Below, in pieces: positions 3,754 to 14,697 of a stretch of DNA of 64,000 nucleotides. The notes below the pieces were generated by a model. That model saw only the letters and a list, made by a program, of their open reading frames with translations. It was not told the origin of the DNA and did no database searches. A program made the translations under genes and the position numbers. The DNA lies in the NCBI GenBank assembly GCA_047495785.1, contig JBLDXI010000045.1, forward strand, positions 620,001 to 684,000, written 5' to 3'. Position 1 is the first letter of the stretch; the number at the start of each line of letters is the position of its first letter. The stretch comes from Lepidodermella squamata. Taxonomy: Eukaryota; Animalia; Gastrotricha.

Positions 3754-6700
3754 ATGGCGTTGCAACACAGCAGCTATGAGCCATCGTCCAACTTCGGAAG
3801 TTACGGCGCTCGTTACGGAGCCGGTGGTTTCACGGGTTATGGCGGCTATGACGCCAGTTTACCGTCCACCGCCGCTTCAACAACGTCGAACGGCTTTGAA
3901 GGCTCGGGCTATAACGCCACAATGTCGTCTTTCACTAACTCGGCCTTGGTACCGCTCGACGAGCAGCAGATTTACGAGAGATTAGCCGATCAGAGTTACA
4001 AATCTAGATCGGAAATTCTCGACCACCTTCGCATCGTACTGCGCCGTAGTGCTACCGCCCTACCCTACAACAACCCGGAAATCGTGTTCGATGGCCTCGC
4101 CCTTGCGTTGACTGACTCAACTTGGGACGTTCGTCAACAAACCATCCAAGTTATTCGCGACGCGCTACCGAAATTGGGCGATCGGCTAGTACCCTGCATG
4201 ACTATAGTCATGCCTTTACTTATCAACAACATCGGCGACCGGAAAGCAACGGTCAGAAAAGGTGTGACTCAGGCCCTTCATTGTTACCTGAAGCAACCGA
4301 AAGCCGACGCTTCGTTATGTTTGAATGCCTTGATAGCGCATGGCTTCAACTCGAACGATACAGAAGTTGTACGGGAAGTTGTAGCGATCGTTCCGGTTTT
4401 ATTGACGCAAGAATTTGCGGATATGATCGATATTTCTCGGTTAATGAGCGAGCTTATGAAAAAATTGCCCGCCGAGGGTCAGCCTGTTAAGGACAGACTC
4501 GAACAACTCGCGCTAGCTGGGTTGGAAAAAATGCGAAGCGTCGTCGGTGAGGCGAGATTTCGCGATGCCCAAAGCCGATGCCCTCGAGCCCTAAGAAGGC
4601 GCTATAACATTTTGCAACCTGAAAACACCGGTATGGATGCAGACAGTGATCACGAGCCTGATGCGGTTTCATCCCGCCTTCCTGTGAGCCAAGGCAGCGT
4701 GCGTAACAGCTTCGCTACTGGTAATACTGACTCAGCGGCTCCGGTGAACAACGCGGTTCCTGTCGCGTCTTATGCGTCTGTTGTAGCGCCTTCAACCCCA
4801 GTAACACCGGTCACGGTTTCAAATGTCACCGAGTCAAAGTATTTTGGCATTATTCCAGGAGATGTTTACGCTAAGGTTTGATATTTTGACGTTTTCGATT
4901 TTATCTCTCAGTTATTGTTTTGAGGCTAAATTTTTCGCCCAATTTGTTTTGAATTCCCTCTAGATTCTAGGTTCTAATAATTTGAAAAATTAACGAGTAA
5001 TGAATTGCGGTAAAATGGGCTCGGGATGATTAATTATGCACACATTTCCAAATTGGCCAGTTTTTACAGTTCAAACCAAAAATATTTACGCTAATTGATT
5101 CAATAATTAATGAAGGGCTCGTGGCGTAAATTTTCGTCAATTTTATGAACTTTTATTTTTCCGCAGTTGATGGACGATAACCCGCGCGCGCGTCTCGAGG
5201 GCGCCGATGAGCTGAAGGCGATAATAACGCGGCTGCAATCGGGAATAGCGCTTCACTCGAGTCTTTCCGATCTACTGCGCTTTCTGTCCGATTTTCTCGA
5301 CGATGCGAATTTCAAAGTTGTAACAACAACGCTTGAAATTTTCCTCCTGCTCATCAAGACCGCCGTCGACATTCGCTCGCACGTCGGCGCCATCGTCGAC
5401 GCCGTCGGCCGGCGCATGAGCGACGCCAAGCTGCTGATCCGCCAGGGCGTCTCCAGCGTCATGCTGCAGTTGATGCGCCTCGTCAGCGCCATGCCCGTCA
5501 TCGAGCTCATCTCGGCGTATTTCCGCCACAAAAACTCACGAATGCGGCAGGAAAGCGTTAATCTCGCCATCGCGGCGCTACTCAGTTTCCCGAAGGAAGA
5601 CTTCGACTTCGAGTTTTTGTCCAACGCCGTTGTCCCGCTGCTGCTCGACTCGAAAGTTCAGGTGCGCCAGGCTGCGATAGAATGCGTCTCAGTCATCGCG
5701 CACCTGCTCAACCCGAGCGAGGTTTCGGTGCTAATGCGGGCGATTCACAAGGTCGAGGACGCGAACCCGACCGAGGGCGAAGGCCTGGCGGCGGCGGTTA
5801 AAGTTCGAGCTGCTCGCCACCAACTGCCTCATTTGAACTCGGACGGGCTGGTCGAGTACTCAGTCGCATTGCCGGGTTCGGCCAGCCAACGCGCAATGCG
5901 CCCGATGCCGGCCGGTTCGGACACTTCGCTGATTTTAGCCGCGGCAGGCGGCCACTCGGCGGCCCGGCCTTCACAATCAGTTGCCGTCTTCACGGGAGGG
6001 GAGGATTTTACGGGTCCGAGAACCCCGCTTTCTGGAAAAGCGCGTCTGCCCTGGCAATCTGCTCAACAATTTCCGCCTCAGTCTGACCAGGTAATTCAAT
6101 AATTCAAAAATGAGAAAAAAATTAAATTAGGGAAAAATGTGAAGAATTAGGTTTTCAGCATCATTATTCAGCTGATTTTTAAAAATTCTACTCAAAATTA
6201 GTCTGGCGATTTTCACATTTTGCGGATCTTGAAATTTTTCTTGAAATTTGTTTGACAATCTTTTCAAGTCATTTTAGCCGCTAGGGCTCAAATCCCGGTT
6301 TTTATGTTCTCTCGATTTATTTTTGTTCGTCTTTTTTATTGGGACGGAATTTGGGCGAAACGAGGCTCTCAAGTTTATTGCACCATTTTTCAATATACTT
6401 TTCGCCGGGCATTATTAACGCGACATCCGTTGTGTTGCTTGTCACATGACTTTGTCGCCGTTGGCTCCCTTTTTTTATACCGGCTTTTTGCCTCACCTGC
6501 GTACACGTCATAAAAATGTTCGAACTTGGCATAGGTACAGCGCACGCCGCTTGAGTTTGATTATATTCTTTCGAATCGAACTATACACACCTGTGTGTCT
6601 GCATTTCATTGTTTTACACCGGCTGCGTGCGCGCTTGCGGTCTTCTTATATTATAATTATTATTTTCTCGGCCTCGAGGCGCGTCTGTGCAGCGCGGTGC

Positions 6701-9700
6701 GATTTTTTATTAAAAATGTATTAGCTATTGTTGTTCGAGCGCACACGCTGCGCGCTTCGCTAAGCTTGCGGTGCATATGTTTCTTTAGCTTTATTATTCC
6801 GATACTACTACTATACACTAGCTCGTCTTGCGGCGCGGAAGTTTGTCAGTCCTCGAGCTGGCGCGCACGTGTGGCCATTTTGCTTGTCATTGTTGCAAAT
6901 CGAGCGATAGATTTCCTCGATCCTGTGACGGAAATAACTCACGCGATCGATGCAGACGGAAAAAACGGGAATGAGAGGGCCATAATAACCGTCATTAATA
7001 TCACTTCCGGACAAAATATTTCGTTCCTTTTATTTTTTCCACAACCTGGCAATCGCGGATGTTGTAAATATGTGAGTCACTTAACTACGAAACCCCTCGT
7101 GGCCGAAGAACCAGGCACTCTAAGTGGGCCAGTGCACGCAATTTCTCCGGCGGTATGGCTTATGAAATGATGAAAAAAAGGCACGCTGACCTTGAAGAAC
7201 TATTTCCCTGAGGCGTTGTTGTGCGGTTTGCCGCTCTGATTTCCGCCCTTGTACCTACCGACCAGGTACATTTCAATAAAAAAGTTGTAGAAACAATAAT
7301 AGAGCTGCTCATCTGTTTGATTTTTCCTATCCTAAATGGCCTTAGTGTTGCCGTACATCAGCCAAAAACAGGTAAAACTAGGCATTGATAGAAAAAAATC
7401 AAATTACAGCGGATAAGTATATGGGCTTTGTTTGTTCGAGGCGCGCGCGCTTTGATCTGCGTCACTAAATAATAATAATTATTATTTGATTCCAATCGAT
7501 TTGTTTTTATTTGCTCTTCTCCTTACTTATACTGAGATTGAATCAAGCCACCTGCCGTTTATTCATGGGGGTAGCTCTCGAAAACCTATATTTGCACTGC
7601 TATAGTACTGAATGATGAGGCTTTATTTACGCCAATAACTGTTTGTAAATAAATGCCTTGCACGGGACAATTTTCTGTCAATTTTGGATTTTCAACATGA
7701 TAACGCCGCGTTTCGGGCGTTTGTTGCCACTTTAGCAAAGTCTAGGCGCCACGTGGCCCGGACATGGGCGCTAGCTGCTCGCGGGCCCAGGCGCTGGAGC
7801 CACCGCGAGTCCCCCCACCAACGCCCATCCTTCATAGGAACAACATAGAAAACGAGATATTTGATCAGATATCCGCGCAAAATCAGGTTAATATTTACGT
7901 TTTAAGGGTCATAAGTGCGTTCGATTTTTATTACAAAATGGTCTCGCAACACCCGCGAGTTGTCGCTAATTTCATGTTATTCTCACCTCAGACGGTTCCG
8001 TTCAACAAGCGCGGAAACAACGCCTTTTTCGATGCTGATGACATTGAGGAACTTGTCCCGAATACAATTATTCACGGCAAGTTAGACCCCAAGCGCAACA
8101 AACAGCCGGAAAATGGCGGTTATTACAAGCAATACCTGGAAACGAGCAACAAACGACAGCTGGCCTTTGAGAACGGCAACAGCAACAACCATGGCAACCG
8201 GTTAAACCATCAAATGCCTGGACATATGTGTAAGTTCAAGTCGAAATCTCGCCGGAAAATCGTTCAAAAAACGAATTTTTATTAGCTTCCTCAACTGAAG
8301 TTTTAAACGCACCTCGAAGCGAAAGCCCAGCTGTTGACGTGTGGAGCTACGACGATGCTGGTAAATCAACTTTTTTTCATGATATCATAGCAAATTAATA
8401 TGCGTGATATAAATTGTAATAATGACCTTCTTGTAAATAACGTGAATCACGCTGTTTCAGCTTTTTCAAGCTGGATCAATGAACTAACAAAGAAGGCCGG
8501 GAAATCTGGTAAAGTTTGATGTTGCGAATGATGTGTAGTTCCCTTGATTGTTTGGAACCCTTGGAATGTTTGACAAATTTTGGCCTTGCAGGGAAATTAT
8601 CCAAATTAATTCGATACGGATTGGAATTTTCTCTTAAAATTCAAACTTTATTTTCCGATGTAAATGTTGCTTTTTTATTTATGATTTCCACGCAAATTTC
8701 CGAAAATATTAATATTTTTTTTAATATTACAGACCATGTTGGACGTCGCGCCCCTCCTCAGCCGAAACATCGAGCCAGCCAGGCGTTGATGCGACCAGCT
8801 CAACTAGCCATCAATCAGAACTCTTATTCGGATAAAGAGCAAATGATGTCCCAAACATTGCCGCAGCCTCAGCATTCGAAAAAAGGCCCGTTGATGGCGC
8901 CAAACGGGGCGGCAGTTGCGCCGAAACAGCTCGCCAACTCGGTTGCGTTCGAGTTGTCGGCGAAAGCTGCCCTGGACCAGCAGCAGGCGTCGGTTAACGG
9001 CTCGTCGAACCACCTTTCGCCACCAGAGCAGATGAAACAGCGAGGCAGTGCTTCGCAACGCCGAGCTCAACGCATTTTCGACCGACTGGAATCGGAAGAC
9101 AGCGGCGTGGGCTCCGGGTCTCACGGCCAGAGCGGCCCGGGTAGTAACAAATCATCGGCTGGCAAGAGCCTTGCTAATGAAATCGACGAGCTGTCGCCTA
9201 AAATGCCTCATCGCAAAGTTCCTGCGCTCGAAAAAGCTTTCTTCGTTGACTTGTAAGTTTTTCATTAGAATGACTGAAAATTTTAAAATATTTAAATTTA
9301 AATTTTGAATTTTGAATTAAATTTTTTTTTAATTAAAATTTAGTTCAGTGGAATCAAAATTGAATTTAAAATAAAATTGTGTTTTTTTCAACAATTTCGG
9401 AATTTTATAATAAATTATTAGAATCCAAAATAAATTACAACATTCATGCATGCATTTTTTTAATTTTAAAATTCTTTATTTCAGTAACGAAGATAAGCCT
9501 GTGAAAGCTCCGCCAAAGGCGCGACCAAAGCCTGTTAAAACTAGCGATTCGCCCCCTCGACTTCCCGACAATGAATCGATGATGTTCGACGACCAACCGC
9601 TGGCTTCGGATCACAACCGTCGTCAAAATAGGCAGCATCAAAATAACAGTGAGTTGGCTAAATTCTGTAAACTTACTCGAGTAATCTCAACCCCCTATGC

Positions 9701-12700
9701 ATGATCTTTAAATGTGACCTGTTTTACTGATCTATTTTTGTTAAAAAATCTCAAATTTCTTGCATGTGGCTTATTTCACCTGATACTAAAGGCATGGCTG
9801 TTATGGATGTTGAATCTGACCAACCTCCCGCTTCGAACCATGATAACAAAAACGATACCGCTGATGATAACACTGCACAAAACGGCAAGGATTTGCCCGT
9901 ACCAGTTCGACCGGGAAGACCGGAGCGAAAATCACTGCCTGGTAAATATTGGGCTCTTATATCGCAAAATCAAAACACCGCTTATTTTATATCAATTTTA
10001 ATTTCCTCTTATTTTCTTTTTTCTCATCTTTTCTTTTGTTTTCGTTTCGCCTCGTTGCGTTGCGTATCAAAGGTAATCCTCCTCCTCCGCCGTCAGACGA
10101 GCGTCAAAGTCAAAATGCAACGCTGAGCCAAAATCAAAATAATTCAAATTCGGTTAACCTGTCTGCTGACGCGTTTAGTCACCCTATTAATCAAAACAAC
10201 AACAACACCAGCAACAACAGCTCACCGGCGATAAAGCTGATATCGACAGCTAGCTTTTCTAGTAATAATAGTTCAAATTTCAATTCGCTGACTTCTCATG
10301 CAATGCAAATTCACGTTCCTCACGCCCCGCCAAACTCGCAACGTTCGAACATCCCAACTTACCAGTACCCGAACGCCAGTAATCAACTCCTTCAGATGAG
10401 CAGCAACAGTCACAATGGAGATGGTACTGAATAAATCTTATAGCTTGATTCGCATTTTTAGTCACCTATCACATTTTTCGTTGTTACGCATGACCTATCC
10501 CAAATTTTTTTGAACGATCGACCGTAAAAATTAATATTTTTCCATAATTTTTCAGCTCTAATGGAAGAAGATGGTTTGAATGGGTTTCAAAAGCCGAGGA
10601 AACAGCCGCCGCCTATCAAACAACCGGTCATCGCTTTGGGGGCGATAAACAACCGAGGCCGGGCTGGTTTCGAGGTTGGCGAACCCAACGAGCCGTTCAA
10701 CAACAGCTTCAATAACAGTATGAATGGCAACAACGGTGACGAGCCGTTCTTCACCAAGTCTTTACCGAGGCCGAAACGGCAGCAACAATCAACAGATCAA
10801 GCCGCGTTTGAACAAATGAATTCGTATCGATCTCCGAACCACGCGCCGTCAGAACCAGCCTTCCCCGGAAACGCCACTTATTCCTACCTGGCGAATCTGG
10901 AAACAGGTTCTAGCAGCGGAATCGGGTCCAACTCGCCGCCTGGCCGCACTGATAACAGTCTGATTCGAAGTGGAATGGGCTTCCCGAGCCGCGAAGATCT
11001 CAGCCGGCAATCTACGCACAGCTTGATGGCTGAGGAGCGGCTGAGAAGTGGCGACGAGCGGATGATTGAGAAGTACGAAGAGCTGAAGCGGCGCCAAAAG
11101 GCGTTTCTTCGAGCTCTTTCGGCCAACTTCGCGTCAGATGTCGTCGCCGCTGAGCATCAATCTATGAATGCGACGATGAGCTCGGGCAGTCTGAGCGCTT
11201 ATGATCACAAGTAAGTTGAAATGTTATTCGTCCTAATGATTTTTTATTGAATGAAGTTGAAAAACGTGTCACCAGTTCGAAGGAAAAATTGTCTCTGGAC
11301 AGTTAAAAAATTTTAAGGCGAAAATGAAATTCTAATGATGATTCACTCATTTTATCGAATAATTTCAGTCATAAAAAAAATTCCTTTCATTTTCGGTTGC
11401 GTGTAAGCTAGCGCGAGTCTCTCGCTTTTTGCGACCCGGCAAATTCGTAAATTTTCAAGTCAATGTCGGCGCTTTTTTGCCTCTTGTGATGACTGTCGCG
11501 TTGGATCGGCTACTGCCAACAGTTCATCGACGAGCTTGCGGCGAAAGTCCGCCGGCATTTCTCTCTTGTTTCTCGGATTTAAAGCTCGCCAAATGATGAA
11601 GGCATTGTTCATTGCAGTTTCAAAGCCCCAGTAGAAAACAGTTCGCGTCCATTTCTGACCAGGCCGAGCGAGTTGCAAAGTTAGGATTTCTGTCAACTCG
11701 CGATCTATTAGAAAGAAAACTCAAAAAATTTAAGATCCTACCGCCAAGTCCTTTAACCCACTTTCGTCCCTGCCAATCAACTCGAAGTCATAGACGTACT
11801 CGGACTCGGGCGTAGATAGCACGTTAAACTTGATGCCCCGCCTATTTTGCTGCGACTCAGTCATACACCTCCATCCAGCCAGTTGCACTTCTTCATCCAT
11901 CTTATCAAAATTCGAAAATATTAAAAACCAAAATATTTGAAAAAATAAATTGCCTTATTTTCAGGATTGTAGCAGCGCTTAAAGGCCTCGCGTAATTTTT
12001 CCAAAAAATCGTTAACCTTCGCGGCTCTATGACAGTAAAAATCTCCTTGAGGCGCGGTCGCGTTATTGTCACCCAGATGTAGATAGTGGAGAATGGCAAA
12101 AAATCGCTCGCCGCTCATAATTTTAGCGATGAAAGCTTCGAAAATAACGAAAATAAAAAGTAATTCAGACTACCTATGCGAAAAAATACCGTTGTAGCCT
12201 ATGATTGCAGACTTATCCCAGTACAATGACATGTCGTATATGACAACCAGAGTCATGGCGACTAAAATAGCGAAAAAACTGTTAAGTTCGGCCTCGTCAA
12301 TATGCATGAATTGCTGCATCCCCGGCTTCCAAACTTGCATCGAGTAAATATTAGTTTGCAAGGTAATTAGGTCAAAAACCGGGAAAAGCGATTTAAAAAT
12401 CGCCAGCCGGCCAAGCTTGCCCTCGCTATGCATAGCAGCTTTATAGGCATCGCGTACTTCTTGCGAAGGTCCTGGCCGTTCTTTCAACGCTTGGCGAGTT
12501 TTAAGCGCTTGCTCAATTTTTTTCCAACTTTCTCGCTTCTTCAACTGCAGTGCCGCATCCTCTTCTTCATCGTATTCTTCCTCGCTCGACAATTCTGTAT
12601 CCGTATCGCCGATATCATCGCGAAAATTATTGCTACTAGTTGCCGTGCAAAACATTTCTTAAAAAATCAATGCTCAAAACCGCATGAAAATAAAAAATAA

Positions 12701-14697
12701 TTCCACTTTTTTCACGCACCAATTATTTCCATCTTAATTGTTGCGCAACAGAGCCCGTTTATTGCGTAATAAAATTAAGAAGTTTTTATTCCAATTTTGT
12801 TAACGGCTCTTTTTTCTTGTTTTGCAGTCGCCAAGGCACAGCACCGCCTCAACTCGATGGAATCGGATCCGCGCCACCTAAATTCGTTTCAAGGCGCCCG
12901 CCAAAGCTCAAACCAGTCGCACCCCCTGCCGGCTACCAGCCACCTCAAAGGTCAACGCCTCGACGCACACCTGGAGGCGGCGGCGGTGGTGGCGGGGTGG
13001 CATTCACCACATTCACTGTAAACACCCAACTCCGCGCCGCTGATCTCGCCTACGACCTACTTCCAGAGCCGCAAAACGCCGCTAGAACCCTAACCGACGC
13101 TGGTGTCGCCCTGACCAATGACGATTGGGAGGTAAAATGCGAAGGCCTCAACCTCTTGAGATCCGTCGTAAAATTCCAGCCAAGCGCATTGACCGATGGA
13201 AATCAGCTGCATCAAACGAATCTCGCAATGATCGCCGAGATGAAAAATCTCCGGTCCCAGGTCGCTAGATTGGCGATTCAAGGCATGCGAGAGATGTTCC
13301 AGCAGCTGAAACGAGCCATGGATATCGACGCGGAGAACATCGCAAAGGTCCTACTCGCTAGGTCGGGTGATACAAACCAGTTCTTACGCGCTGACTCTGA
13401 AACAGCGCTAACAGCCATGGCGCAATCGATCAGCCCGGTCAAGGCGCTGACCGCCCTTCTCCAAAACGGCCTCGGTCATCGTAATGTCAGCGTTCGGCGT
13501 TCAACCGCGCAGCATTTGCTCGAGGTCGTCGAACGCATGGGTGCTGCTAAGGCGCTGTCCGGGGTGCCTGAGATCACCGGCCAGCTGATGCCGGCCGTGC
13601 TTCAATTTTTGATGGACGGCTCGCCGGAAACGCGCTTCTACGCCCGGAAATTATGCCACATGCTACTCAGCCACCCTGATTTCGATAAAATGGTTCAAAA
13701 ATTCTGCGCGCCAAACTTAATCGCCAACGCTAGGGACGTAGTCGAAACTGTCCGGACGAAAGGCCCGGGCGAGTTGACGTCGATAGGCAGTAGCCAGCGG
13801 CTGACAGACTACAGCGCTACGCCGAATTCGATGAATGGCGTCATCACGCCGTTGGGCAGCGCCGGCCATAACAACGCATCGTCGGCTGTTGCCAAGCCCG
13901 TGAAACCATTAAGGCGGCTCGATGAAGCGACGCTGGACACGGTTCGCAGCGTTATCGCGCAAATGTCGTCGAACGACTGGCGAGAGCGGTACGACGGGAT
14001 AACAGCCCTGGTTCAGATGACGGAGCATTCGCCGGAGGTAACGTCGTCTCAGTTGACGAAGCTGTTCGACAAATTCTGCCCGCTGCTCAAGGATATGAAC
14101 AGTAAAGTCAATCTATTCGCGTTACAGGCTTTGCAAACCATGCTGCCGATGATAAGCAACGACGTCGGGCCGTTGATTCCGCTGATTATGCAACATTTAA
14201 CGATTAATTTGTCGTCGAAATCGCACGAGATACAGCAGGCCGCTGCTGGGGCGATGCACTCAATGCTGGCCTACGTCGACCCGGCATCGCTGCTGCAACC
14301 GTTCGCTAATCAGACCCAAACGGCGAATTCTAGGAATAAAGCTTTCATGATCGATCGGCTATCGGAAATTGTCGATTCGGTTTGCGATCGGAAAATGAAG
14401 CAAGTCACGCTGCACATTCTGCCGCTGTTGTGGCACCTGTTAGGCTCGGTCACCCAGTCGGGTTCGCTGCCGGGTGGCGCTGGCAATATCCGCCAGTCAA
14501 CCGCGCGCCTCGCCATGGTGCTGCACCAGCACATGGGCGATGATTTGATGCAACACGCGGGCGCCGCCAGTTTGCCGGAGAAGAATTACCTACTGCTGCA
14601 GGAGCTGCTTCGAAGCTCTGCCGGCCCCGCGGCGCCCAGGTCACGCAACGGGCCAACAATTGGCGAGGACCTCGATCAAGCCGTAGTAGCTAGATAG
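3754..14697 (+). CDS. TOGARAM1: TOG array regulator of axonemal microtubules (crescerin/FAM179B/CHE-12), about 12 exons
   Basis: Two N-terminal HEAT/TOG domains (3754-4875, 5167-6090; LDDANFKVV, HKNSRMRQE), a long low-complexity linker in short exons, and two C-terminal TOG domains (12828-14697; NDDWEVKCEGL, KNLRSQVAR, SNDWRERYDGI, DMNSKVN). The linker exon boundaries are less certain. Confidence 0.9.
11460..12655 (-). CDS. piggyBac transposase-derived protein (DDE_Tnp_1_7-like), 4 exons: 12655-12190, 12135-11954, 11900-11762, 11704-11460; 343 aa; nested antisense in TOGARAM1 intron 11211-12827
   Basis: The spliced product has piggyBac motifs in order: acidic N-terminus, QTNIY, ELNSFFAIL, YWDKS..FIAKIMSGERFFAILHYLHL, CYNPENK-MDE, GIKFNVLS..YVYDFELIG, KWTRTVFYW..AMNNAFIIW, FRRKLVDELL. 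Three introns of 54, 53 (GC-AG) and 57 nt keep the frame open. Confidence 0.8.

Follow-up and report, generated by a model that had tools for sequence, protein, structure and literature searches.

Vertebrate PGBD1-5, the Paramecium PgmL proteins with their Tetrahymena relatives, the KP elements of Drosophila, and the primate CSB-PGBD3 are the described systems with which we compared a piggyBac-derived locus of the gastrotrich Lepidodermella squamata. The locus lies on the minus strand at positions 12655 to 11460 of a 64,000-nucleotide stretch of DNA, hereafter the window (GenBank assembly GCA_047495785.1, contig JBLDXI010000045.1, positions 620,001 to 684,000 of the forward strand). It holds a spliced open frame of 343 codons, antisense within an intron of a host gene, and its predicted product would be little more than the dimerization/DNA-binding domain (DDBD) of a piggyBac transposase. 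As far as is known, PGBD1-5 keep a full-length transposase-like domain. The ciliate proteins are inactive and piggyBac derived, and they are thought to act through protein or DNA contacts with a related active enzyme. KP elements, which derive from the Drosophila P element, are internally deleted and encode a truncated transposase that may compete for transposon ends or poison multimers. In CSB-PGBD3, a piggyBac-derived coding sequence resides in the sense orientation within an intron of a host gene and is spliced to the upstream host exons as a fusion. To our knowledge, the known cases of piggyBac domestication keep the whole transposase fold, and a form consisting of the DDBD only has not been described before.

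The locus shares with CSB-PGBD3 the residence of a piggyBac-derived coding sequence in an intron, but it is antisense and has its own ATG. Its likeness to the KP elements is one of analogy only, in that an internal deletion leaves the DNA-binding and dimerization parts and removes catalysis; KP elements belong to another superfamily, keep their ends, are mobilized, and are multicopy, whereas the locus is single copy and without ends, and its sister family is itself decayed. With the ciliate PgmL-type partners it has in common, as far as its sequence tells, that it is non-catalytic and piggyBac derived. Those partners, however, retain the overall transposase fold and serve in programmed DNA elimination, whereas the fold of the locus is gutted and no active partner of its own subfamily occurs in the genome. 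Like PGBD1-5, it is a single-copy piggyBac-derived open frame fixed in the host genome without transposon ends, but about 170 codons are missing from its RNase H-like core, and its Cys-rich domain is missing entirely. Catalysis has been lost in several of PGBD1-5, and PGBD1 no longer binds piggyBac-like repeats, according to a preprint (bioRxiv 10.1101/2021.05.19.444448).

The spliced frame and its piggyBac domains

Re-derivation of the gene model from the sequence gave a minus-strand frame spliced from 12655-12190, 12135-11954, 11900-11762, and 11704-11460. The exon lengths of 466, 182, 139, and 245 nt add up to 1032 nt, that is, 343 codons plus the stop, and the phases are consistent. This result bore out the initial annotation of the window, which had proposed an uninterrupted frame of 343 amino acids running through introns of 54, 53, and 57 nt. 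An in-frame stop lies two codons upstream of the ATG at 12655. The features of the locus, in the direction of its reading, are as follows.

12656..12670, minus strand: tract rich in T that ends in AAG and lies 2 nt before the ATG, seen by sequence inspection
12190..12655, minus strand: exon 1, with the ATG at 12655; 155 codons plus 1 nt
12136..12189, minus strand: intron 1, 54 nt, GT-AG, phase 1, GC content 0.28
11954..12135, minus strand: exon 2, remainder of the first DDBD half (IMSGERF...LHLGDN...)
11901..11953, minus strand: intron 2, 53 nt, GC-AG (AAG/GCAATT...GATAAG), phase 0, GC content 0.17
11762..11900, minus strand: exon 3, what is left of the beginning of the RNase H-like catalytic domain
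11705..11761, minus strand: intron 3, 57 nt, GT-AG, phase 1, GC content 0.35
11460..11704, minus strand: exon 4 including the stop codon (11462-11460), matched by the profile of the relatives' exon 4

The GC content was 0.17-0.35 in the introns and 0.44-0.50 in the exons, and the flanks were intron-like (0.30-0.33). The three intron lengths agreed with those of the short introns inferred in the window (median 56 nt; local range 50-65 nt). A splice-site model made from 57 heuristic candidate introns of the window was too noisy for judging GC donors, and the length distribution alone was used. Thus, the introns are of host-typical length, as had been claimed, but the GC-AG type of intron 2 had been missed. 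An alternative in-frame GT donor (AAG/GTTAAC) is present at 12016, 63 nt upstream of the GC donor of intron 2. The T-rich tract in front of the ATG is a possible acceptor that could receive a spliced leader, and we regard it as a lead only.

The profile PF13843 (DDE_Tnp_1_7) matched exon 2 with 29.3 bits (cut-off, 22.4) at profile positions 73-126 and exon 1 with 19.9 bits at positions 5-66, whereas exon 3 alone was without a Pfam match. When the genome was scanned with PF13843, the whole locus scored 42.8 bits (E 1.9e-9; profile positions 5-127). The piggyBac-like nature ascribed to the protein was thereby confirmed, exon 2 being above the cut-off.

Exon 1 codes for an N-terminal tail that is acidic and rich in Ser and Thr (DDIGDTDTELSSEEE...), followed by the beginning of the first DDBD half. 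At the beginning of exon 3, MDE is aligned with "DEQ" of the family, which corresponds to the catalytic D268, so that the first catalytic Asp is retained; the family motifs KGR and KQY..KP have been lost through substitutions and in-frame gaps. Exon 4 opens with 12 unplaced residues, continues with the second DDBD half (RPGQKW...NNAFIIW...FRRKLVDELL), and closes with the terminal basic patch KKRRH. Two origins of the 12 residues were considered, namely, "EAGLAERIV...", with which exon 4 of the relatives begins, and "DKRVVNFL", the exon 5 start of the related transposon L023; the best ungapped score was equalled by 2505 of 5000 shuffles.

Compared with a profile of the relatives' last exon, exon 4 matched positions 170-233 of 312 only, from RPGQKW on (E 1.6e-16). 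Because the match begins only there, the locus lacks DNWF (D346), GVD (D447), and the insertion domain, and its catalytic triad is incomplete, with the first Asp alone present. The frame stops at the basic patch of the family, ahead of a Cys-rich domain of about 75 amino acids, and the same profile, applied to every frame of 11200-12830, detected remnants of neither the missing core nor the Cys-rich domain. The total loss therefore amounts to about 170 codons of the catalytic core, two of the three catalytic Asp (the second and the third) and the insertion domain among them, plus the whole Cys-rich domain. The inventory given by the initial annotation, namely, a retained first Asp, a protein ending in KKRRH, and the absence of D346, the insertion domain, D447, and the Cys-rich domain, agrees with both the profile alignment and the all-frame search.

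In T. ni piggyBac, the DDBD comprises residues 117-263 and 457-535, the catalytic domain runs from 263 to 457, the insertion domain from 372 to 433, and the Cys-rich domain (CRD) from 553 to 594; the all-helical DDBD keeps the dimer together and touches the transposon end at bp 7-16 (PMC7351741). When the locus was mapped onto these borders, exons 1 and 2 covered the acidic tail together with the first half of the DDBD; exon 3 covered the opening stretch of the catalytic domain (approximately 50 residues, the first Asp among them), and exon 4, after its 12 residues, covered the second half of the DDBD followed by the basic patch. The lost parts map to most of the catalytic domain with the insertion domain, and to the CRD. 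As predicted from the parts it retains, the 343-codon product cannot be a transposase.

Relatives in the genome, shared introns, and immobility

The genome searched consists of 121 Mb in 151 contigs, with the locus on contig 45. A DNA search of these 121 Mb returned a single match, the locus itself, and protein searches with exons 1 and 4 found the nearest relatives at 47-53% identity, all in the same genome. Combined with the absence of any match of exon 1 among 1.84 billion representative proteins (see below), this argues, in line with the initial annotation, that the locus arose independently of the vertebrate PGBD1-5, its nearest relatives being transposons of its own genome.

The inverted-repeat scan around the gene revealed no credible inverted repeat. 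Neither TTAACCC nor GGGTTAA ends were found, and none of the six flanking TTAA sites has an adjoining CCC or GGG. Both the scan and the inspection of TTAA sites agree with the earlier observation that TTAA-flanked terminal inverted repeats (TIRs) are missing. At least 80 PF13843 pieces occur in the genome, and many dispersed TIR-bearing copies of the locus were not seen. Thus, the locus is an immobile, single-copy, TIR-less piggyBac-derived open frame.

The locus is a member of a clade with intron-bearing transposase genes, which includes L023/L024/L032, L012/L031, L018, and L013-L016; the relatives carry the DNWF and GVD motifs and the Cys-rich domain. The positions of two families of this clade are as follows.

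L013-L016, C25:878431-882207, C31:871374-875150, C36:1093041-1096817, and C42:640443-644219: piggyBac copies
Sister family, L023 at C61:114450-117671, L024 at C46:1514198-1517434, and L032 at C3:2412840-2413330: three or more copies in decay

Introns 2 and 3 of the locus occupy the same sites and have the same phases as in L012 and L023, the donor of intron 3 coinciding with that of intron 3 in both, and intron 1 shares site and phase with intron 1 of L023. At the homologous site of intron 2, the relatives have a GT donor (GTAGGT in L023 and GTTCGT in L012), whereas the locus has GC. An acidic N-terminal motif is common to the locus, L012, and L024, and the basic patch is likewise shared with the intron-bearing piggyBacs of this genome; unlike the locus, these are full length, multicopy, or recently mobile. 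L013-L016 are four intron-bearing copies with the common 3′ end ...CCGGACTTAGAGGG/TTAA. Because the four copies are 99.4% identical over approximately 3 kb and end in AGAGGG/TTAA, they indicate a recently mobile element, the transposase gene of which requires splicing. Since sites and phases are common to the locus and the related transposons, the comparison indicates that the introns are ancestral to the transposon clade and are not a sign of domestication. This corrects the initial annotation, which had noted introns of host-typical size: they were inherited from an intron-bearing transposon clade, one family of which is still mobile in the genome.

The sister family is in decay. L023 and L024 are 94.5% identical, yet indels and a lost exon are already present; in L024, approximately 200 nt including exon 2 have been lost, and frameshifts occur. 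A match at C3:2412894, considered as a separate exon-4-like sequence, proved to be merely another fragment of the L023/L024 family. On C61, an N-terminal exon lies 2.8 kb upstream of the L023 remainder, probably with an insertion between them. The Cys-rich domain of the clade matched, at E<=0.001, transposon copies only. At C28:1035976-1036203, an isolated open frame of 87 amino acids matches the Cys-rich tail of the L012 transposase (C54) with 100% identity and may represent either a copied fragment or a tail standing alone.

Uneven conservation and competing explanations

The alignable parts of exons 1 to 4 (S1 to S4) were compared with those of the paralogues. Of the residues invariant in five relatives, the locus kept 14/20 in S1, 7/11 in S2, 13/15 in S4, but 6/20 in S3, compared with 34/46 in the other segments together (Fisher p=0.002). 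Of the sites that L023 and L012 have conserved, the locus has changed or deleted 10/31 in S1, 8/19 in S2, 21/31 in S3, and 5/28 in S4 (chi-square p=0.0009). With L012 as the outgroup, the relative rates of the locus and L023 were 10:2 in S1, 8:4 in S2, 15:3 in S3, and 4:4 in S4. Among the relatives, S3 is the most conserved segment (47-85% identity), whereas in the locus it is the least conserved. These comparisons indicate that the catalytic stub drifted strongly, exons 1 and 2 moderately, and exon 4 not at all, a pattern that calls for a period, once catalysis had been lost, during which exon 4 at least was constrained.

A neutral simulation on the actual codons, with substitutions alone and indels uncounted, left the frame free of stops with a probability of 0.11 when the nucleotide divergence was 5%, of 0.027 when it was 8%, and of 0.002 when it was 15%. 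Furthermore, unselected piggyBac DNA in this genome gains indels within approximately 5% divergence, as L023 and L024, already broken at 94.5% identity, show. The uneven conservation and the neutral simulation thus indirectly favor selection for an open frame.

We therefore consider, as the explanation with the better claim, that the locus probably encodes an exapted non-catalytic nuclear protein that is essentially a DDBD, a judgment held with only modest confidence. An intron-bearing piggyBac transposon would have landed in an intron of a TOGARAM-like gene; both transposon ends, approximately 170 core codons, and the Cys-rich domain would then have been lost, immobilizing the single copy. 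What remained would be an open, spliceable frame of 343 codons, comprising the acidic tail, both DDBD halves with a degenerate catalytic stub between them, and the terminal basic patch. After catalysis had been lost, selection may have kept the frame open and the DDBD-coding parts conserved, exon 4 above all. The predicted product would be a nuclear non-catalytic protein that dimerizes and/or binds DNA; more speculatively, it could bind sequences like piggyBac ends, or pair with related transposases, for example, those of the L013 family, and damp them. Of the domesticated non-catalytic DNA-binding/dimerization protein originally proposed, the incapacity for transposition and the retention of the DDBD parts with a selection-like pattern stand, but the introns give it no support.

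Several results weigh against exaptation. A word search with exon 1, and a phmmer search with it against the 1.84 billion representative proteins at E<=0.001, both yielded no match, and even the locus did not appear; this genome is apparently missing from the public protein sets. The sole match in a search of public runs with the stretch was the contig of the DNA source, unbroken and with no joints, a result uninformative on expression. The assembly was made from amplified DNA (PMC11660948), and the supporting contig is not an independent confirmation of the deletion, because it comes from the same amplified-DNA data. The GC donor of intron 2, at a site where the relatives have GT, could be a broken splice site, and two of the three introns have acceptors of the weaker AAG type. 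The conservation tests comprise small samples, 15-31 sites per segment, with a gapped and partly ambiguous alignment of exon 3. Exons 1 and 2 were likewise faster on the branch of the locus, clear constraint being seen in exon 4 only.

These results bring up the main and serious rival, a dead relic, to which we give a substantial but lesser probability. A few large, fairly recent deletions would have removed both ends, the middle, and the tail, one of them in frame by chance, leaving no functional product and a frame that is open only for want of time. The genome is full of piggyBac debris, as its PF13843 pieces attest, and one internal deletion is in frame by chance in about 1 of 3 cases. The acceleration in exons 1 to 3 is what relaxation would give, and the GC donor, the AAG acceptors, the match of the run search to the DNA source only, and the lack of an orthologue in the protein searches all suit a relic. 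A recent origin, however, needs a source family, and no copy above approximately 53% amino acid identity was found. Moreover, the stub has diverged far beyond the DDBD parts, in the reverse of the family's order of conservation, which needs a long time after the loss of catalysis, and for an open frame after such a period the neutral simulation gives P<=0.03, even with indels uncounted. In the flanks, too, neither the ends nor the Cys-rich domain have left a trace.

It is improbable that the locus is expressed with a product other than the 343-amino-acid model, although the GC donor and the in-frame alternative AAG/GTTAAC are both present and the gene lies wholly within a host intron on the opposite strand. 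Should the GC donor fail, read-through would meet a stop, visible in the list of open reading frames, 12 codons past exon 2, giving approximately 230 amino acids (the tail and the first DDBD half); should the GT donor at 12016 be used, 21 residues would be skipped in frame; or the transcript would be antisense RNA to the host pre-mRNA only. The usual consensus of GC donors is AG/GCAAGT. The donor AAG/GCAATT is near this consensus, the alternative intron would be 116 nt long and outside the local range of 50-65 nt, and the conservation of exon 4, the best of the four, makes sense only if translation continues in frame from the upstream exons into exon 4.

The host gene and implications

The exapted DDBD protein that we favor would be encoded by a gene nested within the following host features.

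10561..11210, plus strand: upstream host exon, a low-complexity linker without a Pfam domain, in frame with the downstream exon
11211..12827, plus strand: host intron, 1,617 nt, GT-AG, GTAAGT...TTTTGCAG, phase 2
12828..14697, plus strand: downstream host exon with TOG/HEAT repeats; Pfam CLASP_N 1.7e-16, CEP104-like TOG 5e-9

The host intron encloses the entire piggyBac-derived gene on the opposite strand. Its splice sites are strong, and its removal joins two plus-strand open reading frames in frame. At 1,617 nt, it is approximately 30 times the local median of about 56 nt, and the whole excess is insertion. The nearest Atlas clusters of the downstream exon are TOGARAM1/2-like (scores, 0.95-0.97); a PDB sequence search with this TOG exon gave no match, nor did an Rfam scan of 10400-13000. 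The host is thus recognizable as a TOG-array gene, for which "TOGARAM-like" is a reasonable label, a family-level lead rather than proven orthology; under that label it would count as a cilium gene. The antisense nesting within TOGARAM1 that had been described hence holds for the intron of a TOG-array gene, with TOGARAM at the family level only. Farther upstream on the same strand, a further TOG/HEAT-like open reading frame and several low-complexity ones occupy 5167-6102 and 7764-10434 of the window, and the TOGARAM-like host gene may extend over roughly 5-14.7 kb.

For the reading of similar loci, the introns carry a caution: in this genome, short host-like introns in a transposase gene are a legacy of mobile elements and no sign of domestication. 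New regulators have arisen repeatedly from domesticated transposases, and gastrotrichs are a phylum with almost no molecular data. Tentatively, and with no great probability, we propose that the locus could be a host gene made of the piggyBac DDBD alone, its halves joined by deletion of the core and retained along with the acidic tail and the basic patch. The product would then be a dimer that binds DNA sequence-specifically, or it would inhibit the intron-bearing piggyBacs that are still active. If the locus is expressed and conserved, the DDBD module alone would be recyclable. If this is true, the locus would provide a natural minimal construct for piggyBac pairing and DNA recognition, or a natural inhibitor of piggyBac transposition.

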